Assembly (NCBI GenBank): GCA_964199315.1
Contig: OZ116699.1
Location: 29,946,001 to 30,010,000, forward strand
Origin: Orbicella franksi
Lineage: Eukaryota
DNA length: 64,000 nt
Direction: 5' to 3'
The notes under the pieces are model-generated. The model did no database searches and was not told the DNA's origin. It saw only the letters and a list, made by a program, of their open reading frames with translations. Of this stretch, positions 1,128-52,531 are shown one piece after another (position 1 is the stretch's first letter; the number at the start of each line of letters is the position of its first letter). Made by a program: the position numbers and the translations under genes.

Positions 1128-1246
1128 ATAGGCCATTTCCGAGTTACCACGTGCCTCTGTTTCAAAACGAGTCCTTGGGCAAAACCTTTCATATGAAAAT
1201 GACTTTGATTTGCATGAAAATAAACCTGTCTCAGAAATGGCCCATT
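1128..1246. mobile_element. Short MITE (ataggccattt...aaatggcccatt); duplicate at 23817-23935
   Basis: Terminal inverted repeats and non-coding interior. Confidence 0.55.
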
Positions 1247-4992: not shown

Positions 4993-5068
4993 ATGGCGTC
5001 ACTACACTTCTTGCTGGCGCTGTTTCTACAGCTAGCCATTGCTGCTCTTTTCTTTCAACAGAGCAATG
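4993..5068 (+). CDS. Gene A signal-peptide exon
   Basis: [25 protein letters not shown], hydrophobic core, phase-1 donor gtaagt. Confidence 0.8.
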
Positions 5069-8000
5069 GTAAGTTCTCAAAAGATTCTAGATCCTTTCTG
5101 CAAAAGAACGAGAACAACAATGTTCAAGAATGGTTATTCAATCCAGGGTCCTTCTGGATACTAACCATGATGTTGAATGGGCCACCCTAGCTAAATAAAG
5201 GTTTTTCTCACTTACAGTTACCCAGTAAAACGAAAATAACGAATACGGTAGTTCATAAATAGCTGTGTCTCAATGGATAATGCTTATGGAAAAAAGTGAG
5301 TCACTCTTTTGCTTGCAGTATGATGTTCCGTCTACTCTCTTTATTGTTTTAATTAATAGTTACTCAAAAGAACTATTTCATACCATCCAACCGATCTAAT
5401 CGTTGGAAATAGATTCGAACTTAGATAAAGACTTTCAACATCAATTAACTTTATTTTAACAGGAGCCTTCTGTAGACGACCGGTTGATATCGCCTTTGCA
5501 ATAGATGCCTCGGGCAGTGTGGGAAGTTGGGGATATTACCAAGAAAAGACCTTTGTAAGCAATACCATTGACAGATTCGGAATCTCGCGCTCAGGCACGC
5601 ACGCCGCGGTCATAGTTTACAGCACGAGTGCGCAGGTCGCGATATCTCTCACTCAGTACACCAGCTACCCGAGATTCCACTCTGCCGTACAACGAATTCC
5701 TTACACTAGAGGACTGACAAGGATTGATTTAGCACTGAAAGTGGCAGCCGAACAAGTGTTTTCGGATGATGGCGGTGTACGGAGTAATGTACCCAAAATA
5801 CTGGTGCTGATGACGGACGGTTTTCAAACTCGTACCAGGGATTCCTTGCCGCTTGACAAGGCGGTGCTGCCTTTGAAAGCTCAAGGCGTGCAAGTGTATG
5901 CTTTGGCTATAGGAAAATACACCGAAGAATATGAATTGAGGTTGATCGTGGAGAAGTCATCACATATTTTTCGATCCAGCAAGTTTAGTGGTCTAAAGAG
6001 AGTGATAGGAAGATTGGCAGTAACCACATGTAGAAATGGTGAGTATGTACTGCAGTAAAAATCAAACCGTTCATGATTAATTTTCTGTCTTCTGACACGT
6101 GCGCAATTGAGATTAGTTACAAATTCATCATATGCTAGCTCGCGCTTCGTTTTTTTTTCTCAAACCGTTTACTTTTAACAAATTGTGTATATCGCTCCTT
6201 GTTTCTGGATCGTTGCCATCGTTCTTCCCGTACTTATTTAATTCAAATCTCAAATGCAAACGACCAAAAAAGTAAAATATTCCTATGTTAGTTAAATCAG
6301 TTTTAGTTACGACGAGATTAACGCCAATTTTTTTCTTCTAACTAACAGCTCTCCCTGTGGCATTTGCGATCTATCCACTGAACACGCAAACCCGGGGAAG
6401 GGACATCAGTGCACGAAGAGCCCCCACGGGGTATTTAAGTTCAGTAACCAGTGCAATGGGGCCGTATGGGAGACCTGGGGGATCTTTTTATCTACAAGGA
6501 ACACCCAACAGCTACATCGGCTTCCTTAATTCAGCTTCAGGAAAACTAGACACGTGGACGTCAATTTCTATATTTTTGTGGGTTTATCCCGAGGAAAAAC
6601 CCGGCCCGATCGTCAACTATCGAAAAAGCGGGCACGGTCTTGGTCTTTGGCTATCAGGCACGCGTGTGCTTGAGGGTCGTGTTTACGGTCGTCGAAATTA
6701 CTACAGAAGAAAACTGCACTTTACTCATTTCGTGCCAAGAAGATGGTATTATGTGGGTCTCATGTACGATAACACCCACCGATATGCAACCTTGTGGGTC
6801 AACGGACGGGTGGTAGGATGATTTCCATTGTACATATTTGAACAATGTATAAATATCATTAATAACTCCCTATTTAAACTATGGTTCATGTGCATGAGGT
6901 TACTGCTCCCAAACACATTTAAAACGATAGCTAGTGTTACAAAAACGCGCATTGCGCTTAATTTTCGTTCGCCGGAACTCCAGAGAACAGGCAGTTCCCG
7001 TATTTCTTAAGGCCAATTGCCTTCCAGTGTTATTCCTGTTTTTCCACCAGTTTTACTACTTGATGTATGATGCGTACAAAAAAGCCCCTGGCCAATAAAC
7101 CTGCTGAATCAATTCTTAAATTCAGTACAATACTTAACTAACTATAATACCAGATCATCCACGAATAAGTGCTTCTATATAAAATTTTCAAGAACAGAGA
7201 AAACGATAAATCCTTTAAAAGGATATCTTTTATGCATCAGATAAGCAAGTTTTACCCCAAACCTCGCTATTAAGGCGGGATATAACCTAAAATTCTGAAA
7301 GAAATTGGAAGTTTTGTTTTTCACGGAACTCGAATCTTAAGGTATTGAAGTTTTATTCAGTGACAAGTACGGTTACTGTAAGTTTAAAGCTCGTTTTCTC
7401 AAAACGAGTTATTTTCGCCTTCGAGAAAAGATATCGTGAGAAGGATTTATTCAATTGAGCTAAAATTTTCAGGATTTGTTGTTCTTAGTGCGTTCTGTGG
7501 GATAAGCATAGAACTTTTCCATGCAGTGCATTCTGTCGAAGTTATGTATTGACACGTGTGCTAGATTTTCTGTGAGATTTAACTGGTCATCACTTCGTGT
7601 ATTTTTAACTTAAAATCTCTATGCTTATCCCAGCAAGCTATTTGTCTTCTTTTATAAAATGTAAAAAATCATTCCTTTAGATCAGTTTTTGTAGGAGTGA
7701 TCTTTTCTCAAGGAAGCCCTGGCATTCGCCAGCAGATGGCAGATTTAATCAGCCGGTGTCATTAAAATTGTGTCCTAGACAAATTTAGAAAGCAGCAAAG
7801 ATGAAAAGAATATCCTCGTGAAAACAACACGATGGTACCTGAGGTTTGAGAAAATTTCTCGTAAACGAGGCTTGGTGGTGAAGTTTGAGCATGTGACGTA
7901 ATCATGCACAAGACTTATTCACTGGTAATTAAGCTTTAATTAAAACGTCATAATGAAACGAATTGAAAACAAGGAAAGCTAAAGTGGGGATTACATCCGG

Positions 8001-11000
8001 AGGGGCTTATAACCGGATGTATTTTTTGGTTTAGCGGTAGATGGGTTCATAAGCGAGGGCCTTATAAGTGGGGCGGGGGGGGGGGGGAGGGCTTATAGGC
8101 GACAGTTTACGGGGTTTATTAACAATAGGTTTAGAGACAGACAAAAATTACTTTACGAGATTATCTGAATACTAACTAGTAGCTCTGATTTTCAAAGAAT
8201 TCCAGCAAGTTTTGACATTTTCTTTTGCATTTATTTGATGTTTCAGGTTTTTCGCACAACAATGAGCCGAATACACCTGGCTACCCAGCATTCCATTCGA
8301 ATGGGTGCCGTGAGTGGTGTTAATCAGTACTTTAGAGGTCGGGTCACGTGCCTGCAAATATATGGAATGATGTTGACCTCCAATCAGATAGCGACCATAA
8401 AGAAGAAGTGTGCTGCTAGGGACCGTAAGTGGCTTAATGTAATCTCTATGCAATCAGTGTATTTTACAATTATTCCACGAGCGTGCGTTAGATAAGAGAT
8501 GGTTGATAGCCGACCAGGCGGGAAGCGTCGAGTTGGCTATAACCATCTCATATCCAACAAGAGTGAGTGGAATATTTTTTTTTTTATTAAAAACGCCCCT
8601 AAAATGTAGAACAAATTAAAATAAAAATAAAAGCGCCCCAAGGAATCACGCGTACGCTAACCATTTGTGTAGAGCAAGGTATAATGGCTCATATACCATG
8701 ATGGCTAAGCCAATGAAAACTCTTGAACTGCATTATCTAATGATCCAGTTTTTAATATAATAATGTATTGTTGAATTGCATTCCTTTGAATAACCATTTT
8801 CTCTTCCTCTTATATCACGACTTTTTTTTATTATTTCAGAGAAAGATCCTTGTCTTTCCAGCCCATGTAAAAATGGCGGAAGCTGTATCGTCGCTTCAAA
8901 AGATAAAACTGGTTATCGTTGTCGCTGTAAACCTGGTTATCGTGGGCATAGATGTGAAGGTAATAAATAAACAAACAAATAAATAAATAAATAAATAAAT
9001 AAATGAATAACTTTCAATTCGTTTTCTCTGTCACTTCTGGTTAAAGAAATTATCCTTGTGGTTGCTGAAAAAAAAGCAGCCTGCTAATTGCAATTGCAAG
9101 GATAGTATTAATCACTTTGAACTCTCTATCGGCTGTCCACTGCTTATTATGTGGCTTGTGTTTGTAGCCGATATAACGTGCGCTCTGAATGGCCAATTCT
9201 AGAGCATTTTTCTCCCGTGATGTCCACGAGCCGTTTACGGGTCTGCAAAAGCAAAGCAAAAACCGGGTCAGCGGTGCTCATGGCGGTCGGATGTGCTTTT
9301 ACGATCTCCTGCTACTTCACGTTATTTTGCCTGCTTTTACGAGCTTCAGCAACTGACTACAACTACTCTGGGAGTCCACTAACATCTGTGACTTCCAGCA
9401 TCTCTGTTGATCTACGAATTTTATCTGAACGACAATTTTGTGACGAATTATTGATACTTCCATCTGGACCATATGGCGGCGATCTTGCTTTGGAAGGACG
9501 GCTTCGACGAATTAGGTATTTTTCCATACGAATTGCTTACCATACGAATGGAATTACTACATTTAATTCATCTCCCTTTAAAATTATATGCAGCGGTGAT
9601 GTTGAAACTAATCCAGGCGACGAAACTGTCGTTAATTCGTCTTCCAATGCAATATCTTCAACCAGAAATCTTCGATATTTACTACTCAATGCCAGAAGTT
9701 TGAGAAACAAGGTTCTTGATTTGCAAGCCTTGTTGCTGGAGAATTTTTTTCCGGTCATAGCTATTACAGAAACATGGCTCGACGCTAGCTTCATGGACTT
9801 CGAATTGGGTCTGAATGATTACTCTATTCGTCGCAAGGACAGACAAGATCGTAGAGGTGGAGGTGTCTTACTAGCGATACATACAGACTTAATTTCGATA
9901 CGAAGAAGGGATCTGGAGATCGATGACAGAATTGAAACCGTAACGGTGGACATTTGTCAAAAATCAATGGACAACATCCTATTTGGAGTCTGCTATAGAC
10001 CACCTAGTGCTGATATGGAATATTCCCTCATATTACGTCAATGTCTGGAGAGAATTGAAATGACTAGATTTGCTACCTGCTATCTTGTGGGCGACTTCAA
10101 CTTCCCAAGCATTGACTGGTATGGTTTGACTCCCACCTCAATCGATGCATGTACTGTTGATTTTTGTGACGTGCTCAACGATCATTTTCTGGTTCAATGT
10201 AACTTCAATCCAACAAGAATGCTAAATGAAACTGATGGCAATATTCTTGATTTAAATCTGACCAAAATCCCTGATTTGGTTAGTAATGTTGAAGTACTGA
10301 CTGATCATTTTAACTCTGATCATTTTCCTGTCAGCTTTAGTATTAAAATTTTGTCTGGTCGCCCTCGTAAGACTATCCCAAGGAAGGTCTACAATTTTAA
10401 GAAGGCAAACTTTACTAAACTGAACGTAGGATTGTGCCTTCTTGGAAGAGGATGTGGACATTTGTACTGAAAGAGTCAACGATCTATTATTGACTGCTGC
10501 TGATATGTGCATTCCAACCTTTACTGTAAGAAAGAAAATTAATCCTCCATGGATCACCAAGGACATTCTCAATAAGATCAAAAAGAAAAAAAGGTTATGG
10601 CGAAAACTTAAAGCTCATCCATCAGAAGCCCTTAGCAGAAAGTTTAAAGAGTTACCAAGATCAGTCAAACAGCTTATAAGATCTGAGTATAAAAGGTATC
10701 TGCAGCACCTGTCCAGTCAACTGAAGGCAAACCCAAAACGATTTTGGAGCTACCATTCAATTAAGTCGAAATCAAAAAGGCTTCCTGAAGTAAACACTTA
10801 CAACGGAAGATCTGTGACGAAACCTCAACAACAAGCTAATTTATTCAATATTCACTTCCACTCAGTTTTTTGTAAACAGAGCACTCGGGTACCAGCTCCA
10901 AAACAGATTGACTTACAAGACTCAAGACTTGATGTCCTCACCAACCATGTGACACGTGGCACTAAAGAAGTTCAAAAATTGCTTAACCAACTTAATGCTA

Positions 11001-14000
11001 ATAATTCTTGTGGAGTTGATAAAATGCCTGCTCGCCTACTTAAAGAGACTGCTGTCACATCTGCAATTCCCCTGAGTGCACTGTTCAATTTATCATTCAA
11101 TCAGGGACGCCTACCTAAATTATGGAAATCAGCAAATATCACACCTATACATAAGGATGGTGATTGAGAGCCAGTAGAAAATTATAGAGGCATCTCACTC
11201 TTGACTATAATTGGAAAATGCCAGGAGAGAATAGTGTACCATGCTATTTATAATCAAGTTATCAGTTTTATACACGACTCTCATCATGGGTTCCTCACTG
11301 GTCGCTCTTGCACTACCCAACTACTCTTGGTACATCATGACTGGTTCAAGGCCTTGGATAGGAGTGGCCAGGTCGATGTAGTATTTATTGACTTTTCAAA
11401 GGCTTTTGATCTTGTCTGTCATGACATTCTCTTGACCAAACTTTATAAATATGGTGTTCGCGGAGTATTGCTTGATTGGTGCAGAGATTATCATGTTAAC
11501 AGATCGTCAACAGCGTGTAGTAGTGAAAGGAGAGGCTTCTGATTGGCTACCTGTAACCTCTGGTGTCCCACAAGGTTCTTTGTTGGGACCTTTATTTTTC
11601 ATAGTGTATATCAATGATTTACCTGGGGTAATTAGTAAGGGCAGTTCAATCGCTTTTTATGCTGATGACAGTAAAATGTACAGGGTTATTAATACTCAAG
11701 AAGATCTGTCTAATTTTCAGAGTGACATAGATAAAATATCAGAATGGTGTAAGAGGAATAAGATGATAATGAACACTAAGAAATGTAAGATCATGCACAT
11801 AACCAGGAAAAAATCACCTTTAGTTGGGGAATATTTTATTGAAGGTCGACCCTTAGAAAGTGTCAATGTGCACAAAGATTTTGGACTGTTTACTGCCAGT
11901 GATCTCTCATGGAATCAACATACAGATAAAATTACTGCTAGGGCTAATAGAGTGTTGGTGTTATTTGTCCTCCGTATTTGCGAATACACAACAACTGGCG
12001 ACGAGGATGGGATCCAGCTAAACAAGCACAAGCGGTAAACGGAAGTGGGCTCGTGAAATTCACGTGAGAAGTTTAACGACACGACAGAAAATGCCGGACG
12101 AAGCACCGAACACGAGTCAAACCATTGGCAAAGTGACGAAGTATGTTGTGGGGACGGATTGGGAGTCCTACACCGAACAGCTGGATTTTTGCTTCCTCGC
12201 AAATGGCGTTGGGGATGCCAAGACGAAGAAGGCTGTTCGTTTGACGAACCTTCCTGTGGAAACTTATCAATTGGCGAAGGACTTGGTGGCTCCCGCGCAG
12301 CTGAAGGATGAAGCCATTACGTACGATGTCATCGTGGAACGAATGAAGAAGCAACTTAAACCCGAAAGGTCAGCACTGGTCGCGAGGTATGAATTCGATA
12401 ACCGAGCCAGGAATTCCGGTGAGTCAGTTAGTCATTATGTAGCCACTTTGAAGCACTTGGCCACGGAATGCAAGTTTGGAGAAGCTGTGCGAACTGAGCG
12501 TCTCCGTGACCGGTTAGTCTCGGGTATTCGCGACCCGAAGATGATTACTGACTTGTTGAAAGTAAAACTCGCGGACCTTACTTTTGAACTTGCGGTTCAA
12601 AAGTGCCTAGCTATAGAGCAAGCTAATAAAGATGTTCAAGTGCTTCAGGGAGAACAAGGGCCAGACATTCCAGTCAATAAACTTGACACTGCCCAACCTA
12701 GGGAGGGACAGGCTCCACCCAAGTTGCCACAAAAGACACAGGGTTCCCGGGGTAAGGACACCAAGCCACCTAAACCTTGCTACCGTTGTACAGGGTCACA
12801 CAAATCGCAAAAGTGCCCCTTCATTAAGGAACGCTGCTTTCACTGTGGCATAATTGGACACACACAGCGAGCATGTAAGAAGAAACAAGCCACTCAACAA
12901 GTTACTGTCGCTGGAGTAAATGTTATGGAGGGTGCTGATTCAGAAGAAAGCGATGGGGAATATGGGGAACTTTACCATGTTTCTGACAGTAAGAATAGAA
13001 AGCCCATTTCTCTTGAAGTCTACCTCGAAGGTCGACCTGTGATCATGGAGCTGGATACAGGTTCTGCTGTGTCAGTTGTGAGTGAGGGGGTGTATAAGGA
13101 GTACCTGCGTCATGTTCCGTTAAAGGACACCCCTTTGAAGTTGCGTACGTACACGGGCGAGTCAGTAAAACCTATGAGGTTTTGCTATGTGACTGTGCAG
13201 TACAAAGGGCAATCTAAAGAGCTTCCAATTTACGTGATGAAGAACGAGGGACCCACCCTGTTTGGCAGAGAATGGCTGGAGTCCATTCAATTAGATTGGC
13301 CTTTACTTCAGTTAGAAACATCAGACACCAATCCAGCCCTGGAAGAAGTTTTGAACAAACATACAAGTGTTTTCTCGGACGGTCTAGGCAGGATGAAGAA
13401 AATTCAGGCGCGGGTCCAGCTAAAAGAGAGTGCTCGACCGCGATTCTGGAAAGCCCGCCCGGTAGCGTTAGCTCGTAAGCCAGCAGTGGAGGAGGCGTTG
13501 AGAGAGCTAGAGGCTGAAGGGGTTATTAAAAAGGTGACCACTAGTGAGTGGGCTGCTCCAATTGTGACCCCTGTGAAGAAGGATGGTAGTGTTAGGGTGT
13601 GCGGTGACTTCAAGGTGACAATCAATCCACAGTTGGATGTGGACGAATACCCTCTTCCACGCATCGATGATATTTATGCCAACCTTGGTGGGGGTACATT
13701 GTTCAGCGTTATTGACCTGCGTCATGCCTACCTGCAAATGGAGGTTGAGGAGCAATCCAGGCCATTCCTTACCATCAACACAACCCGCGGTTTGTACCAG
13801 TACCAACGTTTACCTTATGGCGTGGCTTCAGCACCAGCCATTTGGCAGCGGGCCATGGACCAGGTCTTAGAGGGTTTACCAGGGGTCTTCTGCTACCTGG
13901 ACGATATCATTGTGACCGGCAGTACTATGGAGGAACACCTTGAGCGGCTGGTTGCGGTGTTGAAGAGGCTGGAAGAGTATGGCTTGAAGGCAAACCGAGA

Positions 14001-17000
14001 AAAGTGCAAATTACTCAGAAGCTTTGTGGAGTATCTGGGACATGTCATCTCTGCTGAAGGACTGCACCAGTCTCCCAAGAAAGTCAAGGCCATCACCGAG
14101 ATGCCAACACCGCAGGATGTCACACAACTGCGCGCTTTCCTAGGCATGGTCCAGTATTATGCCAGGTTCTTACCAGACTTGGCTACCCATCTGGCTCCGC
14201 TGCATCGGCTGTTACAGAAAGAGGTGAAGTGGTCTTGGGGAGCTGAGGAAGAAGCTAGCTTCAGAGTGGTGAAAGAGATGCTTCTACAAGATAAGGTTCT
14301 CGTGCACTATGACCCTGACTTGCCACTAGTTCTGGCCACAGATAGCTCCTCTTATGGTCTTGGCGCTGTATTGTCACACCGTACTCCAGAGGGTGAGGAG
14401 CGGCCCATTGCCTATGCATCCCGTTCTCTGTCAGAAACAGAGAAGAAGTACTCGCAAATCGAGAAAGAGGCCTTATCCCTAGTCTGGGGTGTGAAGAAGT
14501 TCCAAACCTACTTAGAGGGTCGTCATTTTACCCTGGTTACAGACCATCAGCCCTTGAAGTACATAATGGATCCTGGGAAGGCCGTGCCAGTTACCGCAGC
14601 AGCAAGGATACAGCGTTGGTGTCTCTTCGTAGGCGCTTTTGCATACAGCATTGAGTTCCGAGGGACCAAACAGCATGCTAATTGTGATGGTCTATCCCGC
14701 CTTCCGCAACCACGGGCACCTGTTGACAAGCCAGATGAAGTGGAAATGTTCCATACGACTGTGGTCGAGGCCTTACCAGTCACCGAACAAGAGCTGAGAA
14801 TGCAGACTCGGAGAGACCCAGTACTTTCCCGTGTCCTAGAGCTCGTGCAGTGGGGATGGCAAGAAGCAGAAGTCCACCCAGAGCTAATCCCTTATGCTCA
14901 TCGTGCGAGTAAAATCACGATCCATCATGGGGTTCTGATGTGGGGTAGTAGAGTAGTCGTCCCAACCAAACTGAGAGAGAGAGTTTTGGAAACCCTACAT
15001 GAGGGTCACATCGGTATGGTCAAGATGAAAGGTCTGTCCCGGGGTTACGTTTGGTGGCCAAACATTGACAAGGACATCGAAGGAGCAGTCCGAAATTGCG
15101 AAGGATGTCAGGAGACAGCAAATAATCCAGCTCGTGCACCCCTGCATCGGTGGGAGTACCCTGCCCTTCCCTGGCAAAGACTGCATGTTGATTTTGCTGG
15201 GCCATTTCAGGGGAAGATGCTGATGGTGGCGATCCATGCACACAGCAAGTGGCCTAAGATTTTCGTGCTGGAGAACACCACTGCTGAGGAGGCCGTGAGT
15301 GTACTGCGTTCCCTGTTTGCCCGCATGGGACTTCCCGATCAGATTGTGTCTGACAACGGGCCCCAGTTCACATCAGAAACTTTCATGCAACCACTGATCT
15401 TAGCCCTGCACAACTCCTGTTAGGCCGAAATGTCAAGACAAGGTTGGACCTAATTAAGCCCGACATTCAAAGAGAGGTCAACAAAAAGTTGCTCCAGCCA
15501 AACAAAAGCACCTTGAAGAGTTTTGACCACAGCCAGAATGTTTGGGTCCGCAACTACCGTAGAGGTCCAAAATGGGTGCGGGGCACAGTCATTGGGCAAA
15601 CGGGTCCAGTCTTGTACACAGTCAAGGTAAATGACCAAACCTGGAAGCGCCATGTCGAGCAACTACGAGATCGCAACATCTGTCCATCTGCAACGGAAGT
15701 GGTGAATGATGGTGCTGTTCCTGAGGAGGTGGAGCATGGAGTGCCTGCTGTTGTGGGGTCCGAGTGGAAGGATGTGCCGCCCCTGGCTGTGACGCCCACT
15801 AGAGAGGGTCACCCCCCTGAGCCTGAAAGTCAGCGACCGATTCCAGAACCTGAGTTGATTGCTAACAGCACCGGTCGAGTTGTCAAAGCACCCACCAGAT
15901 TGAAAGACTATGTTTGTGACTAAGGAGAACTGTACTGTTGGGACTGTTTTTACAGTACCGACATTTTACCTGAGAGACTTTGTTATTTGTTCTTGAACTT
16001 TGTTTTATTTTTGTTTTGTTTTGTTTGTTAACATTGTTTAGTCTTAAAAGGGGAGGAAACTGTTAGGTTTTCCCGGTTGGGCTCCCTGTTTGTCACGTGA
16101 TCTGTTTTCCATATTTGGCCTCCCACGAGGTCCTCGCGTTCAGTTGAATAAAGAGTGTTCCGCCATCTTGGTTTAGTCTTTTATTTGTCCTCCCTATTTG
16201 CGAATACACAACAGTTGGGATTGGTTAAAAGAACTTGTGGAGATCTCAAGGACATTGATACTAAGAAAACACTATACTGTGGTCTTGTGAGACCTTTATT
16301 GGAATATTCATGCGAAACTTGGAACCCTCATACAAAACGTAACATTGATAAATTAGAGTCTGTTCAGCGAAGAGCCACCAGATGGATTACTAAGTCTGAT
16401 GATGATTACGGTCTTAGATTATCGAAGTTAAAATTGTTGTCTTTATTTAATAGGAGGTTTATTAGAGATACTACATTTTTGTTTAATGTAATTAATGAGC
16501 ATTATGATATAGATATCTCAGACAAGCTCATGTTTTGTAAGGACAGAAGCACAGGCCACAACTTAAGGGAAAATGACACACAGGATCTTATCCCAAATCT
16601 AAGTAGGACTAATGGTTTTAAATATAGTTTTTTTTTAACCGGATTGTTAATGAATGGAATAGTTTACCTAATCACATTAGAGAAGCAAATTGTATTGGAA
16701 CTTTTAAAAGGACTGTTTTAAGTTATCTTATGGATAATTAGAATATTTGTATATTTGTATTTGTATTTGTATTTGTATTTGTATATTTGTATATATATTT
16801 TAAATTTTGATAAGTGGGGACATCCCTAGTATGGTGCCATTGCGCTTTTGGTTGTCTCCTTCTCCACTGCTTTTTGTTTGTTTGTTTGTTTTTAGTTAGT
16901 TATCTTAATTTTTCATAATGTATTCGTATTGTATGGAGTAAATTGCAATAAATAAATAAACAAAAAGCCATATAATAAACAACTTGTTAACCTCGATCGA

Positions 17001-23777: not shown

Positions 23778-24336
23778 CGTGGCTCCTTTATATCATTATA
23801 AAAGACAAAACATTCCATAGGCCATTTCCGAGTTACCATGTACCTCTGTTTCAAAACGAGTCCTCGTGCAAAACCTTTCATATGAAAATGACTTTGATTT
23901 GCATGAAAATGAACCTGCCTCAGAAATGGCCTATTGGAATGTCAAGAGAACTAAAACTATTTCTATTCATTATGTTTGCAGAAAAGACATGTAAAATGCA
24001 GTTCATGGGTTAAAAGTTAGTCCGCCGTTTAACGAGCTGTTATAAAAACCCAACGATCGAAGAATTGTGCATTTTGTTTATCTGTATTCTATTTACAGCA
24101 TTTAGTTTCCTTCACTAATTTTAGGATCTCAAGAACATTACAATATTTTACAGCTTGTGCTGATAGTTATTGCCTTCTATGTTTAGCAGTATTAAATCCG
24201 TTTTTCTTCTTGAAGAAAGTGTCGACTTCTGTGTCTGGATCATCATGTAAAATCTCTCTTGATTATTAATTCAAGAGCCCTAAAACTATAGTGTGTTATT
24301 TTTGTTATTTTCACTGTCCTATATTTTCAGTCTGGT

Positions 24337-24630
24337 GGAGGCATGGTGGCCTCATGGTTAGTGCGCTCGTCTCCGGATCGAGTGGTCCGGGTTCGAGTCC
24401 TAGCCAGGGACATTGTGTTCTTGGGCAAGATAATTTACTCTAGCAGTGCTTCTCTCCATCCAGGTGAACAAATGGGTACCGGCGAATTTAATGCTGGGGG
24501 TAACCCTGCGATGGAGTGGCATCTCATCCAGGGGGGAGTAGAAAAACTCCTAGTCGTTTCATGCTACGAAAACAGGGATAAGCTCTGGCCTGATGGGCCA
24601 CTCGGCGCGTTTAATTTGCAGACTTAGCCT
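24337..24630 (+). mobile_element. tRNA-derived SINE (copy B)
   Basis: Duplicate of 1648-1936. Confidence 0.8.
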
Positions 24631-41067: not shown

Positions 41068-44000
41068 TTTTGATTTTATTTGTTAGTAAGTCGGTACATA
41101 GTTAGTAGAGGTCGGTATAATCATTGTTTTCCAGCGGAACTAACTGAATCTATTAATGCAACAAACACACACCAGCGACAGAAGCCTCACCTGAATTCCT
41201 ACAGAGGAAAATTCTTGACATTCCTCTCAGTCTCACATATGGAGAGAGAAACAAACAGCCACCGCAACTCGGGCATTTCTTCTCTAAGCATGTAAAATTA
41301 TGATATGTTTTGAAAAAACAGGATTCGTTTGTAGAACGATTTAACCAGTATCAAATCTAGCTCGACATGAGGGGCTAGCTATTAGAATAGTTTAATAAAT
41401 AGACATTAAAATTATTCAAGGTATCGTCCTTTTGTCGTCATTTTTACAGCTAATACTTACTGAGTAAGCTAAAACGTTCTCGAGGCGTAGTATATTCTGT
41501 TTTATATAGAAATACATTTACATTTTTATCGCTGATTTATGTTATACATCTTAGTGCTCTTGGTGCTGAAATTCATTTAAGAAAAGCATCCGTTCAAGAA
41601 ATGCATGGAAAAATAAAAGACAGAGTAGTCTTCAATTAGAGTCTTAATGAAAGTTAGGGAACAAAATGAAATAATAACCTGGCGTAGATGAATACCTCAA
41701 TAGCACGAGAAAAGTACGGAATAGACAGATATATCTTCAGTTGTAAAGTACGTGTTAAATTCCTGACTGAGTTAGAAATGGTGTGAGTAAACTAATATAG
41801 AATACCATGGTGCTGTGAAAAGATTACTGAAGGACTATAGCGATAATCCAAAAAAATCAGTTCCCTTATTGTAGTTAAATATAAATAAATCCATGCAATT
41901 CAACGCCGAATTTGTCTGTTTTGTCATTTAAAGATTCGTCTGTCGAGTCAATAAAACAAATCTCAAACTAACGTCAATACATTCAATTGATGTTAAGAAG
42001 ATTTCCCACATAATTTTGAACAAATAGAACCCATTTGATTACAGGCGAGTGATAAAATTTGGTCCAAGGCCAATAGTGCTCGGCATCAAATTCATAGTGC
42101 ACAAAAATGATCCCTTTTTAATTGTTCAATTACTGAGAGAAACTGGAATAACTGTGACCACGATCTAAACTTTACGCAGATATTTCGTTTTCCAATCCTT
42201 GGAGATACTTGTCTGTAAGAGTTCCAAGATACATAGTTCCATCTCTCAGATAGAGCAAACCAAGTTCGAAGTGAAAGCCAGTGGAAATATGCTAGTTTGT
42301 TCACAGTCTATTATGCAATTAACCTGATCTGTTACGGCCTTACAACAATCATTCTAGGCAATACGGCGCGGCGTGTAATTCTGGGTTGAAAAGTATCTCC
42401 TATCACTCGTTCCCATTTTTCCTGGTATGTCTACCCAGTCCCCATTTGGTTTGGCGTGACGTGAGGTGACAAGAGATGTGCACTGAGCTAGCAAATCAAA
42501 CAGTAAGTAAACGGGACGTTTTGGGATTCACAAGCAATTAAATGGTGTTTTTTAATTCATATACCAGTGACCACATACAGTGTACGTAATCCTAGTCTAT
42601 AGTTGTTAGCGCTTTCATCAGTTGTAACTGATTTGCACATATTTTAGGCACAATCTTTTTGTGTGAAAAATATCTTATTCTCGTGAATTTACCCAACCGG
42701 CGTTTGTTTTAAACAAAGTAGACGTTTTGGGGGAACATCCTCATAGGATTGTTATGAAATGGCGTTAAAAAACAACCTGTTAAACTTCTTTCATCTAAGG
42801 CTGAAAACAATTCCAGAAAGTTGTAAGCTCGATGTACTCTACTCATCAAATTACTTATTTTACTATTTCGATAATAAAACAGCATGCGCCAATATCCTAC
42901 AGACTACAAGTTTGTTGGAAAGCTATACTTCCTTTTCCAGTATTTTTTCATACCATAGAATTGTTCCAAAAACACCATAAATTTTAATGACATAAGGAAG
43001 CCCATTTCCTCGAGCCTTCACCGAATTCGGTTGTCTGCAAAAATAAACTTGTGACGTTAGTGCAGTAATATTCAACAGCAAACATACATTTCTTCTAAAT
43101 ACATCCATTTATACACATACTTTTATGAGAAAAGAGACAAACTTGTTCCTAAAATTGAACTAAAACGCCGACATTTTTTGTTCATTGTTTCTCCAACCTT
43201 GGACGAAATCCCATCAACAGCCAGATGGCGTCATGTTTGATTCGCTATTTTCAGCAACCTGGTGTTTTACCATGTTTTGACAAAAGAACAACAAAACAAA
43301 TGGACAATCTATCGTTTCTGTTGGCCAGCCAATTGAAAACATTGAGTGACTTATGATTGAAAATATTTAAACCTTTGGGATTGAATCACTACAATCAGAC
43401 TAGGAGGTAGTTCTAAGTGAGCCATGTCTGGAGGGTTCTAGCCAAGACCAAAGGACTTCATATATTTGGCTCCGAAAACTGCCTTATTAGATACAGGTAA
43501 GAGAAATTCATCGCTTTGACCGATTTATTAACAAAGGTCGGTCGTATTTGCAGCCCGATTTAACGGTAGCGTTAAATCGATTAATGATGGCATTCTGATA
43601 GAGGTAAAACATTGAGTAGCGTCGTCGGTCTTTGAGTGAAAAGTGTTCGATGTATGGGGTAAAAATGTCATCCTAGACAATGTGAAAAATTTTACTTTAT
43701 CTCCAGTTTTGTTTCTTTTTGGAATTTCTAGTTCAGACGCAAATTTGATATTTTGCGGATTAACCTATATTCTGCTCTTTATCCCCGTGGCTTAAATACG
43801 TAAGCCCTTCTTTAAACATTTCGGTATTGAAACATCATTGAAAACAGATGGAGATAAAGACTGAATTAAGAATTGAATTACGTTATTTTGGACTTCGCTT
43901 CAAGTCTTACGTTAAATCGTTATTTTAACTTGTGACCGTCCATGAGTAATGGAGCAAAGAGTGTTTTTTTTAAATCTTGTTCACACCATGAAGTGATCGT

Positions 44001-45335
44001 TTATATATCAAAGGAAAACAATTTACGAAAGGACGAAGTAGAAATGTCATCAGCCTGTAAACAAGAAAATGGATCTTTCGTTAAGGTCGCATGTAAATGT
44101 GATAGATGGGGTGGAAAAGAAAACACTTGTTACAGCTGATTAATTTCAAAACTTTGCATCGTTTTTGCCAGTGTTTTAGCTTTGTTTCTTGTAATTTACA
44201 CGTTTGTGGCAACATAAGTCTTCAGTCGATATTGTTATGAATTTAGCATTCCGTCGTGATATGGTAATTTAACTACATGAGATAATATATGTTATCTTTC
44301 AAATGATTGGCATGTCTTGACTTTTTCCGAGATCCTGAAACATGCCAACTCCTTTGAAATTTATTTTAACCTGTCCTTTCCTTGGAACAAAAAAAATCCA
44401 AATTTCCCCTGTAACACTGCAGGGTTTAATTGCTTCAAAAAAGAGGCCTAGGAGAATACCTGATGTTACACCCACCTGTCATGTTTATAGATTGTATGTT
44501 ATTATATGAAATGATCCGTGCAATATGTAATACTAAGTGACTGGTTTGTTCATCGTAGGGACGACGCTCTTTGATCAGCAAGGGAAACTCGAGATTGAGG
44601 TGAGGGAGAATCAATTGTCGAACAATGAATAGCGAGTTTAACTTAACCTTTGGCTTTTTTTCAGAGTGAATCTTTCATATCAAATATTTCATGTGAGTAG
44701 TTAAAAGAGAAAACCTCAAAAGTCACACGTCTTTCCCAGAAGTCTTGCCATCTGTCTAGAGAAATATAAGCAACTTATATATTGTTGTGATGGACTTTTC
44801 ATGTAAAGATTGTGTATTGTTAAGGTCTTAATTTTTCTTATGACTAAATCAAACTAGCTGTCATATAGGACAGAGCTGAGTGTTTGCTAGAGTCGACTTA
44901 TTCTACATGAAAGAGTATTCTGGTATGCCTGGATGTGTGAATCAGCAAAGTAGCATTCCTTTGAGTTCCCCAATTGAGACAAATACTGTAACTTCTCCGT
45001 ACTCCGTTCATCAGCGTTACTATTGAAGGGTACAAAAAAATCCATTCCATATATTCTCTAAAGAACCTTGCCTAAACTTCCATTTTTCAGTCTATCCCGC
45101 AATATATTCTACAGAAAAAAAAGCTCTTATTATATAATAGAATATATCCTTGTCGTACTGCCTAAAAATACCGCAACTGTAAGTTAGCTTGTGTAATGCT
45201 CTATTTCTTTATGTGTTGGAAGATTTCTGCTACATTCATGTTAAACGACATGTTAACTGATACAAAGACGTAACGTTGCTCACTTTTACTTTGTATCCTT
45301 CGTTGCTACAGGTTTGGAAAGCCTAGCCGACTGAT

Positions 45336-48300
45336 ATGAGGGGATTCTTAGCAATTTTTCTACTAACGTTTGGTCTCCTCGTAAGAGCTAGAGGTGAGAT
45401 CCCTTACGTTGTGGGATAGATTAAACAAACAATATATAAATGTTGAATTTTAGTTAGATTTCTGAGTCACTATTGTTGTAGATGCAATATAACGTGGCGT
45501 ATTATGAAATAAGATGGACTGCCGTGTATCATCACCTCTTGTCAACAGACTATGTTCTATCATGTCAAGCCCCTTTCTAGTCGCTCAGTTAGCAGTCACT
45601 TTGATTATGTCGGACTAGCCATACTTAACTGAACAGAGGTGCTCATAATAAAAGCATGTTTTTCTTAAGGTCAACTGGTGGCTTTTTTCCCTGACTGAAT
45701 TATTAAAAAACCTTTTTTTCCCAAAGCATTATTACACAAACTAAGCGGATTTAATTCCGTGTTAACTGACATATTTGTGTATCGAGAGAGCTAAAGACAT
45801 CATTCTGCCGTTAAGTTCTTTAATTGAGGTTGCCGTGTTACAGATTGGCAAGCTCTTTTATCAGGAGTAAAATGGAAAATAATTAAACACCATCACTGGA
45901 AATTTTCCTAAATAGACACATTTTGAGATTTTGAGATTTCATTAAAACCAAATTACGCGAATTAAACCAGCTAGTCCTACAAAAAACTACTAAATGAAAA
46001 GACTTGTTGTATTAGCTAATGGTAATATATTTAATGTCTCTCTTTTTCATCTGATAACTTTAGAACATGACAGGTTTTCTCCAACAAGATCCAGTCTCAA
46101 TGACGGTTTGTGCTCAGATTTGATCTTTATATTAAAAATAAGTTCTACCCCCTTGTAAGGCCTAAAATGTCAGTTCAGTCCATGGGAAAAGGAACCCTTT
46201 CACAGCAAAACCCAATTAATACCTGCCGAAGAATGACGAATTTTGGAAATAATTTTAGTTGTTAGAAATTATACTATTCTAATCAGAAGTTTATTTAAAA
46301 ATAAAGTACAATTCTCTCTTTCAATCAATAGACCAATCAGGGTGGCACATGTAAAGTTCTAAACTAAAATTCTTTAAGATAACTAAGTATAATAACGTTT
46401 GATCAATAACTATAACAGCCACTACTTACTTAAGAGATTTAAAGATTTCAGAATAATAATAAGTTAAGCCCTTTGGATTTTTTCCCGAAATATTAAGAAA
46501 TAACTCATAGGAGTCTATTGTATAGCTAACAAGGGTTAAACTCAGATATCAACACATCTCATACACACTGACTCTCTTTGTGGCGTGCGCTAGTCGAATA
46601 GCGGGCTTAGTTACCGATCGTTACCGTTGCTAGATGTCTCTATAGTGTACCAGTCGTGACAGTGCGTTCGTCGATTATTTGTAATCATTTCTGCATGAAC
46701 AGAAAACGTGTTAGAATCGTATGTTATATCTGACTTACACTATCAGGTTTACCAGCTTAACGGCATCCAGCATGGTGTAGGCATGTTTTCACAAATAACA
46801 CTGACCAATGGCAATGATTTAATTGCAGCATTTACTGATAGCAGTGACGAGTCGGCTGCACCATCATCGTTTTCTGATTCCGCATCACGACATAACAACA
46901 ACAACAACAACAACAACGACTGGCTTACTGACGATGATGACGATGATGAGGATGACGTCATGGACGAAAGTCAACTAAACGTGCAACCAGCAGCTAAAGC
47001 GGCAGCAGCGAAAACGGCAGGCAAGCCAAAGGTAGCTGTGGTTCCACTCAGTACTGGTAAGTTACTGGCCTGTCTCCGAGTGAAATCAATATCACGCTGT
47101 TTTAATAAGTGTCTTATCTGCTGTCCTACTGTTAATTTCTCTTATTTGTTTTCTGACCAAATTGATGACATAAATCTTTAACTGAAAGCTACCTTTTGTC
47201 TAAGTTTCCACTTGCATGTACAGATGTTAACACTTATTACTAAACATAATTTTCATTCCATCTCGTCCATCTCATATTTCTCCTCAGCGCAAATAGCGAG
47301 CAAACTGCTCTACGGGCTAAATGGTTTGCGTCGCAGCTTTGGAGCAGGGCCTGTAATTTGGTCGCCAACCCTCGATATTGGAGCTAAGGCCGCTAATGAC
47401 GCAATGCAAAAGGCAGGTGTAGTCAAGAAAGATCCCAACATCAAACACGGAACCCTGCAGTGTATAAAACTAACAAGTTCAGACAAAGTGGTTGCAGAAT
47501 GTTTATCGTTTTGGGGGCGGCAAATGCAGGATTATGATTGGTCAAAACCAGCAATCAAGGAAAACAACAGATTTTTTGTCACAGCCGTTTACAAGGCAGC
47601 GACACATGCTGGTGTTTCGGTCAAGAAAGGACCTTCGGGAAGATTCTTTTGTACTCTGCTGCTAGATCCTGCCCCTGATGCATCTAAGTTGAAGGACAAT
47701 GTGAAATCATACACTGGTAAGAGTGTTTTTAATGTTCCTCAGAATTTTCAGTAGGCCTAGTAAGTACCTAGTCACTTTGAGTCACAAGCCTTCCAATGTT
47801 TTTAAAGGACATCATATAAAATTGCCTTTTGCACCTTTCATTTTCCGAGAAACAAACCACAAGACTTTGTATTTTCCACTCCCGAAAGTTATTGGTGGGA
47901 TATGCACTTGACGGACTATGAGTATGTTTGTAGATGGCACGTTTAATTTTCCAAACTTTAAAGAAGTATTCAATCGCTTTCAACAGTTGGTTACTAAATA
48001 TATCTTCATATTTCTGTCGCTGATCGTTGATCATGCAACCTCTTCTGCCTGGTCCTGTTGAATCATCAAAGGGAATTTATAATTTCATAATTTCTGCAAC
48101 TAGTCAATTATCTTTTTACTGCAATGCAGTTGTTTCGACTTACTTTGATCCCTCTTTGTTTCAGATCTTTTCACTAGTGTTCCTGGAGGTAAAATATTTT
48201 TGTTGTTTACCGTTTTATCGCTAAAATAGTTATGCTTAATCCTTTTAGCCCCAATGTAAGCTTCATTTCAATATATGAAGATAAGCTTTCAATTACGTAG

Positions 48301-51300
48301 TGACCATGCTTACATTAGCTGAAGCATGGTTTGACTGATCTTTTACCAGTTGAGAGATATAGCTCTGATAAGATAAGAGGCAGCGCTTTCATTGTTATAG
48401 CCGCCATGTGAATGAAAAGTGCTTACTTTGTGCAAGCATAATTCTTCCTGATTTTGCAAGTTTTCACCCTTTTTTGCTATTTCTTCGTAGCTAAATGTTC
48501 GACTGGATTTACCGAATTCGGAGGATCCTGCTACAAACTTCACAAAGACAAACAAACCTGGATGAATGCAAACGCAGAATGTATCAAGGAATCTGCATTT
48601 CTGCCGCCAATCGGGAGTACAACGGAAAACGAATTTTTTAAACAGGGGCTCTTGAAAGGCGAGAAAGGTTTCAGCTGGCTCGGTTTCAATGACCGCCTTT
48701 CAGAGAGCATGTATATGTCAGTTGAGGGATCACAAATCCGCTTCATGGACTGGGTTAACGGTCAGCCTACCGGCAAAAATGAAAACTGTATAGGGTTCAA
48801 TAAAGACGCTAAATACGGAACGATGGCAGACTATCCATGTACCACAGCCAGCACATATGTGTGCAAAAAGCCCTTGGAAGGTAAGTAGGAGTTTCATTCA
48901 AAGTAACAGACGACTTGAGTGGTAAAGTCACGAGACGTAAATTTTCCATAAACTAGAATCAAGACTCCCAGATTTGTTGAAGAGAGCAGTGTTCCAAAAT
49001 TTTGCCTATAATTTGACCGTGCTTGAGTAATCTTTTGCCACCGTAAAAAAGGATGATGTTTCATATATTCACTTTTATATGATTTCATTTTAGTCATGAA
49101 ATTGGGAGCAATTGAGTAATTGGAATTTGCTTGTTCATTTTAGGTGACATAACCTATCTCCTCAAGATTGTAATAGAATCCATGCTGTGGTTGGACGATT
49201 TGAGCAATCCTGGCTCCCTCGCTTCACAGCAGCTTTCCAAAAAGCTCCAACAGGCGGTATGCATAAAACGTTTCCTTGTCCAGAAAATGTTTGCTATTAA
49301 CAGTGATTGAATAGACTAGCTTTTAGAAAAAGCAAAACTTGATGTACCTGGATCAATTTTAAGTTTAATAACAGAAAAATAGATAAATGAAGTTAATGAG
49401 TGCATGTCAGTTTAACAGAATTAACCAAAAGCGACAAAGGTTGTGCAACTTGGGTTCCAAAATGATCAGTCTCAATAAGAAAGCAGCGATGTTGTATAAT
49501 CATTGATAATGGATCATTTGCTTCCCCTTTGATGTGTAGATCAAAGAAATTTACACGAAGGCGGGAGTCAAAAACCTTAAGGCTGTCACTATCACCTCCG
49601 TTAGGTAAGTTAGAGCAAATTCCTTCAAACTAACAGCATTTAATTTGTTATAATTTGTAAGTTGGACAGATATTCTGCTGTTACAATGACGTCAGTCATT
49701 TTATCATCCCTGTCATCATAGGCCAAGTTAAATCCTGATGCTTTCTTTGAATGGATAATTCCTTAGTGATGGACATCGTGGTAATTCACGAATATGTGAT
49801 AAATACTCACAACTATGTGAAAAATATTTTCTCTGAGGATACTTACTGAATAAAATAATGTCATCCCTTTCAGCAATGGTTTACCACCACAGCCAGCACA
49901 AGCATACCCAGCATACAACTATCTGGGCAAGCGTCAGGTGACTGCCATCAGAGTCACCCCCGCACCTACCACGCCACCCAAACCCAAACCCTCAGCTGGA
50001 GCCGCGAGCAAACCTACTGTCAAACCCACACCTCCCAAAGTTCCAACAACAAAGTAAGGAGTGACGTCTTTCGATTTGATGATATTACAGTGCATTTCAT
50101 TACTTAGTTAGTGTAAAGGCTCGCAGTAAAGAATAAACGCATGGTTTCCATTACAAAGGTGTAATTTAGCTGCCAAAATGTCCTTCTTAAATGCTTTTTG
50201 TAGGATTTTTTGCAGGGCACAGTACTAACTTATGTATTGATCATTTTGTCATCGGAAGAAAGTAATTTATGTCTGAAACGAAATATGACTTGTCTCTTTA
50301 ACTTGTGCTCCAAATGAAAACACTATCATATATTTTCAGGCCAAAGAAGAAGGTTACTGTCAAACTTTCATTGACGTTCGGACCAAGCGGCATTCTACCT
50401 GACCCAACCGCACCTCTTCAGGATTATCTTCGTGCCAACGCCAACAAACTACCAGCGCCATTGAACGAACAAGTTAAACTGCTTTCCATTAGCATTGCTC
50501 CTCCAGGTATATAAAAACGTTAATTTTTCGGTAATTATACTTTTCTCTGACAACGCTCAACTTCGTCGCTTGTTGTAGTTCCATCATAAATCTTAACGTA
50601 AGCAAAAGGTGAGGTCTAACTTTTCAGTTATGTAGGTCATTTTGTACGATTTCCATTCGTTCCGACGCATGACAACAGAGTAAACAGTACAAATCTAAAT
50701 GTTTGCGTTTATGATTTTAGGTTCAGCGTCCTGCCCTCCTATCTGCTCCACCTCATGCGTGTCAAGCTGTGCACCGAGTTGTTGTTTCAGACCGGCGCCT
50801 GCCCCAGCTCCATACGTACCACCCCAGCCATGTGTCCCCACTCCATATAATCCATGTCCGCCTAAACCAGCACCAACACAGCCAGCGCCGACACAACCGA
50901 AGGTCCCAGCCAAACGACCCGCGGCAAAATGTACACCGACTCCATCAACACCGTGTCTACCACCAGTGCCTTATCCTTACCCACCGCCAGCATTTCCTCA
51001 GTACCCGGCTCCACCGTGTGTTCCAACTGTAATGAACAACTTTTGCAGGAACCTAGTCGCCAAGCCGCTTGTAGCAAACGGAGGAGGGTTCTTTGCTCCA
51101 AAGCCTGTCGTGAATCCTGCCGGCATTACTTACAGATATCCACTTCAACCGGCATACAGGCGTATCATGCCTAGGTTGGTATCTTCAAGGCCGGTTTCTC
51201 GCGCTGTGTTGCCTGTTCCACAGGCAGGGGGTTATAGGCAGTGTGTTCCTAGTCCTTCAAACCCATGCTCTCCAATAATGATGCCTCCTCCTCCACCTCC

Positions 51301-52177
51301 GCCTCAGCCTATGATGATACCTCAGTTTCCTATGCCTCAGGTAAGCAATCGATTTGCTCCATTGTGTTGCATGCCAAAACGTCCATGTTATAGCGGTACG
51401 AAACACCACAAAAATCAAATACAGCTAGTAAGCAAAGGACAGCAAGAGTTCCGAGCGGCCTTTTATGAGATTCAAAAGCGGGAATTTATAACAAGGATGA
51501 AGAGAATTCGATAAAAATGCTTGAAGAAAAGAGCAAATGCAATAAATTCACTGACTAACAAGTGGTTCTTTACGCAAAACCCTTCTGTGACGAGGTGAGG
51601 ATGAGGAGAGGTGGAAGGAGACAGGGAGGGCTTATACATATGGGTATTGACAGACCTATTCCAGCGTTTATAATCTGTGGGCATTTGTATATATGTAATT
51701 TATTATGTAAGTTAGACATAGAGCGCTTTCAGATAAAAGTAAATTTATGATATCTGATTTGTAACCAATCCTGACTTAAAGCGTTGTTCGATTCGTTCCA
51801 ATTTTAATCGCAATTCTTTTTTCTCTTTCTTTCCACAGATGGCACCGCCCTGCATTCCAAATATTTCCCCGAACTGTCCCCCAAAACCTCCACCGAAGAA
51901 GCCGGCAGCTAAAGCGGTGAAACCAGCCAAACCTTTACGCATAATGGGCTGTACTTATCCACCATGCAGCGTAATGATGCTACCTCCACCACCTCCACCA
52001 CCACCTCCTCCGATGCCAATGCCCATGCCAATGCCCATGCCAATGCCCATGCCTTGTACCCCGACTCCTTTCAACGCCTGTCCACCTCTTTCCCCTCCAA
52101 AAGCAGGCAAGACTAAGTCTAAAAGCACTGCTCCCAAACCGTGCGCTCCAGTACCTACACCCGGATGTGTACCACAA

Positions 52178-52210
<33 letters not shown>

Positions 52211-52531
52211 CCAATGCCAATGCCCATGCCAATGCCAATGCCTGTGCCGCCAATGCCCATGCCGATGCCTTGTGGGCCTCCACCGGCAAAGCCATGTGTC
52301 AAACCAACCAAGCCGCCACCGCCCAAGCCAATGTTAATCAAGCTCCCCGCCATACAGATCCAGGTTCCTCAGCAGCCAGCACCCCCCATGGTCCCACCCA
52401 TGATGCCACCTATGCCTCCTTGCCCTCCAATGTGTGTAGCACCTACCCCTGTTTGTCCGCCAGCGTGCCCCAAACCGTGTTGCAAGAGGGCAAGGCTGGG
52501 AAGGTCCGTACAGTCTTCCAAAAGGGAATAA
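45336..52531 (+). CDS. Gene C: secreted NOWA-like protein SP-acidic-CAP-CTLD-SEA-CRD-Pro/Met-rich-CRD (~988 aa, 11 exons)
   Basis: Exons 45336-45393, 46829-47056, 47288-47716, 48165-48188, 48491-48880, 49144-49256, 49540-49604, 49874-50053, 50340-50506, 50721-51340, 51839-52531. 2967 nt open; signal MRGFLAIFLLTFGLLVRARA. Exon phases parallel gene B. Confidence 0.8.
46894..46956 (+). repeat. Coding (AAC)8 poly-Asn and Asp-rich run in gene C exon 2
   Basis: HNNNNNNNNDWLTDDDDDDEDD. Confidence 0.9.
47288..47716 (+). CDS. Gene C CAP/SCP domain exon (highly degenerate)
   Basis: LNGLRRSFGAGPVIWSPTL..FW..QMQDYDWSKP..FFVTAVYKAATHAGV..LKDNVKSYT; homologous to gene [10 protein letters not shown]. Confidence 0.75.
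48491..48880 (+). CDS. Gene C C-type lectin exon
   Basis: CSTGF..GSCYKL..TW..A..EC..SWLGFND..MDWVNGQP..ENC..C..YVCK. Confidence 0.92.
50721..52531 (+). CDS. Gene C terminal exons: N-CRD, Pro-rich C-x7-C region, (MP)n tracts, variant C-CRD
   Basis: CPPICSTSCVSSCAPSCC (50732-50785); CPPMCVAPTPVCPPACPKPCC-KR (52421-52489); phase-0 intron 51341-51838. Confidence 0.88.
52013..52270 (+). repeat. Coding hexanucleotide repeats (ATGCCM)n encoding (Met-Pro)7 and (Met-Pro)11+3
   Basis: Read directly at 52013-52054 and 52178-52270. Confidence 0.95.

Follow-up and report, generated by a model that had tools for sequence, protein, structure and literature searches.

The nematocyst outer wall antigen of Hydra, NOWA, was reportedly described by Engel et al. 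in 2002. The protein comprises a CAP domain, a C-type lectin domain (CTLD) and then eight minicollagen-type cysteine-rich domains (CRDs), and Garg et al. (2023) re-defined its role: in place of an outer-wall antigen, they described a factor of the capsule matrix and the late tube by which invagination of the tubule is driven, with CRD-linked NOWA oligomers presenting their lectin domains to the chondroitin of the tubule (PMC10014300). The capsule-wall protein CPP-1 is built as CRD-polyproline-CRD, and two CRDs around a spacer are also the layout of cnidoin and minicollagen (PMC6910907). Here we analyzed a stretch of 64 kb from the coral Orbicella franksi, hereafter the window, in which three genes, A, B and C, lie on the plus strand. 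They probably belong to a hexacorallian family of NOWA-like, secreted modular proteins, in which B and C are old paralogs and A is a duplicate of recent origin that has been truncated. As far as sequence comparison can tell, their architecture is a NOWA head on a CPP-1-like tail, without the CRD octad of Hydra NOWA.

Anthozoan genes have received the name NOWA only recently, after the protein had been described as specific to medusozoans in 2012 (PMC3627010) and as confined to Hydra in 2014 (PMC4195985). A NOWA-like gene of Nematostella, NVE17236, was reported as cnidocyte-specific in 2018 (PMC6161364), and NvNOWA-1 to -4 and NvNOWA-related (NV2.10388-10392 and NV2.15872) followed in 2025; three of the NvNOWAs and NvNOWA-related are near-consecutive in gene number (NV2.10388-10392), and the paralogs differ in expression between nematocytes and spirocytes (PMC12549020). 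In coral transcriptomes, 'NOWA' transcripts have been listed by BLAST annotation only (PMC4320547, PMC7430897). An earlier note on the window could not say whether the family had been described. It has been, as the published NOWA-like genes of Nematostella show (PMC6161364, PMC12549020), and the finding is less novel than first thought because the family already has a name there; the prior characterization that the note had listed as a point against its own proposal exists in part, in the NvNOWAs. Its account of Hydra NOWA as a nematocyst-wall component has likewise been overtaken by the re-definition (PMC10014300). New here are exon-level models of the anthozoan version, which differs by a SEA-mucin hinge and by a CPP-1-like tail with conserved C-x7-C units. 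In the searchable literature, we found no description of SEA, of a tail with Pro-rich spacer between two CRDs, or of N-terminal cassettes in anthozoan NOWAs.

To obtain gene models, we enumerated splice junctions with GT/AG sites that keep the frame and matched them to annotated Montipora proteins. With a GC content of about 0.39, the window is AT-rich; it is free of runs of N and shows eukaryotic gene structure. In keeping with a coral origin, the nearest named proteins are two from the scleractinian genus Montipora, XP_068712220.1 (M. foliosa, 1691 aa) and XP_068743568.1 (M. capricornis, 1719 aa), both called 'uncharacterized protein' and both colinear with the exon chain of gene B from the VWA domain to the Lys-rich end. 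The NCBI models of these proteins place VWA to C-terminal CRD, including the CAP, CTLD and CRD exons, in one mRNA, and disagree with each other on the inclusion of mucin and linker exons, which suggests that the corresponding exons of gene B (37269-37463, and 33135-33182 with 33617-33715) may be subject to alternative splicing. In the window, the N-termini of all three models are hydrophobic and signal-peptide-like. A and B carry an additional N-terminal VWA-LamG-EGF cassette bounded by phase-1 introns, and all module boundaries are of phase 1. The SEA introns have the same phases in B and C (1-0, 0-2, 2-2 at the insert, and 2-1), a shared pattern that exon shuffling and common descent predict. 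Several statements of the earlier note are borne out by these models. The order CAP, C-type lectin, CRD is found in all three spliced gene models by both Pfam and a CRD pattern search, and the addition of SEA and the anthozoan distribution are upheld by the relatives described below. Its count of 11-14 exons fits A and B, with 14 each, and fails for C, which has 10; its three genes are three intact open reading frames (ORFs), one of which, A, is a truncated recent duplicate lacking the C-terminal CRD. The note was silent on this truncation and on the VWA, LamG and EGF exons of A and B.

The link to cnidocyst proteins comes from the CRDs. We scanned the window in six frames with a regular expression for the CRD pattern, canonically C-x3-C-x3-C-x3-C-x3-CC, and found five occurrences, three canonical and two with an enlarged second loop, all in the last exons of genes A, B and C. 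When the N-terminal CRDs were compared to the PDB with phmmer (177,635 sequences), the top match was the Hydra NOWA CRD (2hm3-2hm6), with all six cysteines aligned. For gene C, the CRDs of minicollagens (2oq9, 1sop, 1sp7) came directly after NOWA. With queries as short as 31-33 aa, the E values reach only 0.011-1. Gene A has one CRD, and B and C have two each, on either side of a Pro-rich rod of 440-830 aa. A Hydra-type series of eight consecutive CRDs is present in none of A, B and C, in line with the note's proposal that the octad has given way to a tail of CRD, Pro-rich spacer and CRD. Without gene models, these tails appear as long Pro-rich ORFs lacking any Pfam family (38467-41067, 50699-51514 and 51839-52531), with six-cysteine motifs at their start or end.

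Between the CRDs, the tails contain 24-33% Pro and 2.6-3.4% Gly. Minicollagen identity was rejected, as no tail has a Gly-X-Y run of at least four triplets. Instead, the spacers carry a recurring Pro-flanked C-x7-C unit of the type C-[IV]-P-x4-P-C, present in 7-11 internal copies. The regular expression gave 13 matches in the tail of gene B vs 0.9 expected by shuffling, and 8 in that of gene C vs 1.6, counts that include one or two chance matches within each C-terminal CRD; in gene B, 11 are CIP/CVP-type units and 2 lie inside the C-terminal CRD. Elsewhere, we counted 13 matches in the Montipora ortholog, 19 in the protein P0009 and 6 in the Nematostella homolog. Part of the gene B rod is a tandem repeat, each 126-nt unit of which holds one Pro-flanked C-x7-C. 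Behind its C-terminal CRD, gene B encodes a final 47 aa, 25 of them Lys/Arg (40924-41067), and the Montipora ortholog has a similar Lys-rich tail (22/54 Lys/Arg); such a C-terminus could bind the polyanionic capsule matrix. The last exon of gene C also contains microsatellite-like coding repeats, (Met-Pro)n, with periods of 6 and 12 nt (52013-52269).

The whole architecture is shared by proteins of Montipora and Nematostella. Nematostella XP_032226184.2, misnamed 'proline-rich extensin-like protein EPR1', has a signal peptide, an acidic region, CAP, CTLD, SEA with a GKRE insert, a canonical N-terminal CRD, a C-x7-C rod and a C-terminal CRD with a 7-residue second loop. A second protein of this species, XP_048578328.1, starts with PLAT and mucin segments, followed by CAP, CTLD, CRD, a Q/P spacer and CRD. 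A 550-aa cluster including Montipora XP_068742639.1 reads PLAT, LamG, EGF, mucin, CAP, CTLD, SEA, CRD, Q/P spacer, CRD. The 550-aa form (CAP-CTLD-SEA-CRD-CRD) is found as one uninterrupted ORF on contigs of about 2.2 kb in at least 14 sequencing runs, and in that paralog it presumably represents a spliced mRNA joining CAP/CTLD to the CRDs. We rejected a Logan contig with a gene-B-type tail (L007) as splice evidence: judged from its ORF layout alone it looks genomic, as it has an upstream ORF of 92 aa, equal in length to the intron-retaining ORF of the window. An alignment over CAP, CTLD, SEA and the N-terminal CRD (A1) has 57 invariant columns, among them all CRD cysteines. Head regions of family members match each other in blastp with E values from 1e-28 to 0, and those of B, C and XP_032226184.2 are about 32-35% identical to one another. 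Gene C and XP_032226184.2 are putative orthologs, since they share the acidic N-terminal region and a GKR[QE]xT site. Using the CAP-CTLD-SEA-CRD segment of the ortholog, whole-library HMMER returned mostly multi-CTLD receptors and multi-CAP GLIPR-like proteins, with 3 CRD-bearing members, of Nematostella and Montipora, among 150 matches. Hydra NOWA was recovered neither among these 150 nor by the A1 profile search, which gave generic CTLD proteins only.

The tail of gene B also matches unnamed single-exon ORF calls in ENA and Logan assemblies, at 44-86% identity. One such locus from another species (L001; B tail 53% identical) has CAP, CTLD and tail exons in the same order. At a distance of about 5 kb, further downstream, lies another gene, in which signal peptide and acidic exon are followed by CAP, CTLD, SEA and a GKR mucin exon; the exons of gene C are 45-80% identical to it in amino acids. 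This same tandem order indicates that the pair of B followed by C is old and conserved. Several blocks of the B-C intergenic region (43250-45411) match L001 (16577-18785) at the nucleotide level and in all frames, hence they are non-coding; a regulatory function upstream of gene C is possible. ORFs flanking the three-gene cluster in the window matched no Pfam family.

A SEA domain lies between the CTLD and the CRDs and is split, at its beta2-beta3 hairpin, by a mucin-like exon. In relatives, it exceeds the gathering score of Pfam SEA (PF01390, 26.4 bits), with 30.6 bits in Montipora foliosa, 31.8 in M. capricornis and 28.5-31.3 in Nematostella. For the first SEA exons of B (20.6 bits, E 5e-4) and C (16.8 bits, E 7.6e-3), SEA is the sole Pfam family matched, below threshold because these exons encode 37 aa. 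The PLAT-type paralogs have a hairpin G-S-S-[LD]-V, near the SEA autoproteolysis motif, in the place where B and C have the mucin exon. Within this insert, a dibasic GKR[QE]xT site is common to gene C, its ortholog in L001 (23558-23707) and Nematostella XP_032226184.2, and is missing from gene B. Cleavage by a convertase at this site may part head from tail.

Genes A and B are copies from a tandem segmental duplication and are about 97% identical. By self-blastn, 1082-9262 and 16958-23600 match 23771-38570 with 95.5-97% identity, and 23603-23776 matches 38931-39104 with 98.9%. The boundaries of the duplication are thus at 1082/23771 on the left and at 23776/39104 on the right, the right breakpoint of copy 2 falling inside the Pro-rich last exon of gene B, and the two matches have 6 bp in common where the copies meet (23771-23776). 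Gene A reads signal-peptide-like segment, VWA, LamG, EGF, Thr/Pro linkers, CAP, CTLD, SEA with mucin insert, one N-terminal CRD and a 61-aa Pro-rich tail, and its stop codon TGA (23775-23777) is generated exactly by the junction. It lacks the C-terminal CRD, most of the rod and the native 3' untranslated region, whereas on its 5' side about 3.9 kb of the duplicated sequence are retained. Mapping the exons of B onto A showed that every AG/GT site is kept and that all indels are in-frame, including a 360-nt deletion relative to B.

One may ask if the locus has only two real genes, A being a dead pseudogene or the A/B duplication an uncollapsed haplotype assembled in tandem. We consider this rather unlikely. 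The loss of the native 3' end at the junction, the 360-nt deletion and the 7.7 kb retrotransposon nest in an intron of A are what one would expect of a dead copy, and dN/dS over 1060 codons (0.47, with dS 0.037 and dN 0.017) cannot tell a neutral A from a constrained B. Against it, A retains an intact ORF of 1066 aa, all 26 splice sites and the upstream duplicate, and A/B divergence is lower in exons (64 mismatches, 2.13%) than in non-coding sequence (3.11%; Fisher p=0.004). An assembly artefact is disfavored by the absence of N gaps in the window and by the clean 6-bp overlap inside an exon; with copies that differ by the transposon nest and 3% of positions, a real, aged duplication fits better than a haplotype left uncollapsed. 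We regard gene A as a recent truncated duplicate, which may be decaying or neofunctionalising. Its CAP exon and flanks have diverged by 0.5-0.7% only, and the non-coding sequence around that exon (33771-34770) differs by 0.5% between the copies vs about 3% elsewhere. This much lower divergence suggests that local gene conversion may have occurred between the duplicates. The nest itself is a LINE-type endonuclease/reverse transcriptase element (9151-16721; Pfam Exo_endo_phos_2 and RVT_1) broken by a long, intact Ty3/Gypsy-type pol or gag-pol ORF (12064-15923; 1119 aa) with RVT_1, RNaseH and integrase. No direct repeats of at least 60 nt flank the Ty3/Gypsy-type ORF within 9000-17200.

By analogy with the Hydra capsule proteins, the three coral proteins are most plausibly disulfide-anchored cnidocyst scaffold or matrix proteins. 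Alternatively, they could be general secreted proteins of extracellular matrix (ECM), mucus, adhesion or skeletal organic matrix, made outside cnidocytes, with CRD-like motifs that are ordinary disulfide knots. VWA, LamG, EGF, CTLD, SEA and mucin-like segments are indeed typical matrisome modules, and the NOWAs of Nematostella have been filed as 'matrisome-associated, ECM-affiliated' (PMC12549020). We nevertheless judge this alternative clearly unlikely: within the 64 kb, the six-cysteine CRD is confined to these genes, and in the PDB it finds nothing but CRDs of NOWA and minicollagen; a spacer between two CRDs is also the plan of CPP-1, cnidoin and minicollagen in the capsule (PMC6910907); and the Nematostella NOWA and NOWA-like genes are cnidocyte-specific (PMC6161364, PMC12549020). 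The presence of the family in the non-calcifying Nematostella further argues against a skeleton-specific role. A mainly toxic rather than structural function, as venom-related CAP (CRISP-like) secreted proteins, is highly improbable. CAP-domain proteins are released from Nematostella nematocysts, but these are short and single-domain (PMC3627010), whereas CAP is here part of proteins of 1000-1800 aa with cross-linking CRDs and long Pro-rich rods.

Some observations weigh against a cnidocyst role modeled on NOWA, or at least call for care. The pairing of CAP and CTLD is not exclusive to NOWA, and the ESM-Atlas clusters closest to a compact member of the family (P0101) are vertebrate CLEC18, with a weak score of 0.80. 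Literature searches by accession gave no link between XP_032226184.2 or XP_048578328.1 and the NVE or NV2 identifiers. The Pfam SEA match spans profile positions 2-76 only and leaves the C-terminal half unrecognized. AlphaFold, given an insert-free Montipora segment, predicted the beta-alpha-beta-beta-alpha-beta order expected of SEA at low confidence (pLDDT 52.8), and Foldseek on this model found weak ferredoxin-like matches only, with the SEA of MUC16 at rank 10, an outcome that is at most consistent with SEA. Finally, the sugar/Ca2+ triad of the CTLD is degenerate (EPT...MSD in B, QPT...MAD in C), which makes glycan binding by these domains uncertain and counsels caution about a lectin 'zipper' mechanism.

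If the cnidocyst role holds, cnidocytes would, by analogy, produce the proteins and secrete them into the post-Golgi vesicle of the cnidocyst. There, disulfide reshuffling would join the terminal CRDs, possibly together with the C-x7-C units, to the polymer that minicollagens form in the capsule or tubule. The Pro-rich segment would serve as a stiff spacer, and the head of CAP and CTLD, to which A and B add VWA and LamG, would be presented for binding to matrix or glycans, in the way suggested for Hydra NOWA when the tubule invaginates. Gene A's product could then be anchored at one end only. A more speculative scheme, which we think unlikely to hold as a whole, is that hexacorallian NOWA-likes fuse functions that Hydra splits, i.e., the NOWA lectin head and the CRD-polyPro-CRD wall rod of CPP-1, through a SEA domain in which the mucin exon has taken the place of the cleavage hairpin. 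In the lineage of gene C and Nematostella (Nematostella and two scleractinian loci), the GKR[QE]xT convertase-type site would be cut, after which the SEA halves would hold head and rod together non-covalently as a force-sensitive link in the cnidocyst wall or tubule, and the conserved C-x7-C units would represent cross-linking sites of a new kind within the rod.

The models (Table) suggest that N-terminal cassettes are interchangeable between phase-1 introns (VWA-LamG-EGF here, PLAT elsewhere) and that the anthozoan family is still being remodelled by tandem duplication. They provide constructs and targets for antibodies and probes to study wall and tubule assembly of spirocysts and nematocysts in corals, and bear on the diversification of cnidocysts via exon shuffling.

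Table. Coordinates in the window of the three genes, their domains and the features around them.
Feature	Position	Strand	Remarks
Duplication copy 1	1082-23776	+	holds gene A
Duplication copy 2	23771-39104	+	holds 5' part of gene B
Gene A	4993-23777	+	14 exons, 1066 aa
Gene A exons 1-7	4993-5068, 5463-6038, 6349-6812, 8247-8424, 8840-8959, 18195-18242, 18675-18773	+	
Gene A exons 8-14	19288-19725, 20658-21050, 21450-21562, 22112-22170, 22289-22495, 23006-23169, 23512-23777	+	
Retrotransposon nest	9262-16958	+	intron 5 of gene A, 7.7 kb; no counterpart in copy 2
Gene A N-terminal CRD	23538-23591	+	regular expression; canonical
Gene B	27498-41067	+	14 exons, 1833 aa, full length, one clean ORF, all sites canonical GT-AG
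Gene B signal-peptide-like exon	27498-27567	+	
Gene B VWA exon	27962-28537	+	
Gene B LamG exons	28850-29313, 30893-31070	+	
Gene B EGF exon	31487-31606	+	
Gene B Thr/Pro linker mini-exons	33135-33182, 33617-33715	+	
Gene B CAP exon	34220-34657	+	
Gene B CTLD exon	35589-35981	+	
Gene B SEA exons	36412-36524, 37092-37150, 37974-38137	+	
Gene B mucin-like insert exon	37269-37463	+	195 nt, between SEA exons two and three
Gene B tail exon	38483-41067	+	2585 nt, last exon
Gene B N-terminal CRD	38509-38562	+	regular expression; canonical
Tandem repeat	39043-39638	+	TRF; 126-nt (42-aa) unit, 4.7 copies, 94% matches
Gene B C-terminal CRD	40858-40923	+	regular expression; second loop enlarged to 7 residues
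Gene C	45336-52531	+	10 exons, 1009-aa ORF, canonical GT-AG
Gene C signal-peptide-like exon	45336-45393	+	
Gene C acidic-region exon	46829-47056	+	
Gene C CAP exon	47288-47716	+	
Gene C CTLD exon	48491-48880	+	
Gene C SEA exons	49144-49256, 49540-49604, 50340-50506	+	
Gene C mucin-like insert exon	49874-50053	+	with GKR site
Gene C tail exons	50721-51427, 51839-52531	+	CRD, Pro-rich, CRD
Gene C N-terminal CRD	50732-50785	+	regular expression; canonical
Gene C C-terminal CRD	52421-52483	+	regular expression; second loop enlarged to 6 residues
VWA (Pfam)	5519-6055, 28018-28557	+	
Laminin_G_3 (Pfam)	6357-6818, 28858-29322	+	
CAP (Pfam)	19308-19739, 34240-34674, 47212-47751	+	genes A, B, C
Lectin_C (Pfam)	20663-21121, 35594-36034, 48454-48885	+	genes A, B, C

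Among known systems, vertebrate CLEC18 proteins are secreted lectins with CAP, EGF and CTLD. The coral proteins resemble them in having CAP and CTLD in one secreted protein, and differ by CRDs, SEA and a Pro-rich rod, which CLEC18 lacks; we take the Atlas score as a lead only. Nematostella XP_032226184.2 has the layout of gene C throughout. Yet head identity to the Nematostella proteins is about 32%, and neither of the two has VWA-LamG-EGF, one having PLAT instead. With Hydra NOWA, the coral proteins share secretion, the order of CAP/SCP, CTLD and C-terminal minicollagen-type CRDs, and the six aligned CRD cysteines. Unlike it, they have two CRDs (one in A) instead of eight, set apart by the long rod, a SEA domain with mucin-like insert between CTLD and CRD, an N-terminal VWA-LamG-EGF cassette in A and B, and a degenerate sugar triad in B and C. 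As in Hydra CPP-1, cnidoin and minicollagens, the coral tail consists of a CRD, a Pro-rich spacer without globular domain and a CRD, the spacer of CPP-1 being polyproline. In contrast to these proteins, the tail follows a large lectin-type head in the same polypeptide, and its spacer is far longer, carries the C-x7-C units in place of Gly-X-Y triplets, and leads to a C-terminal CRD with an enlarged second loop.

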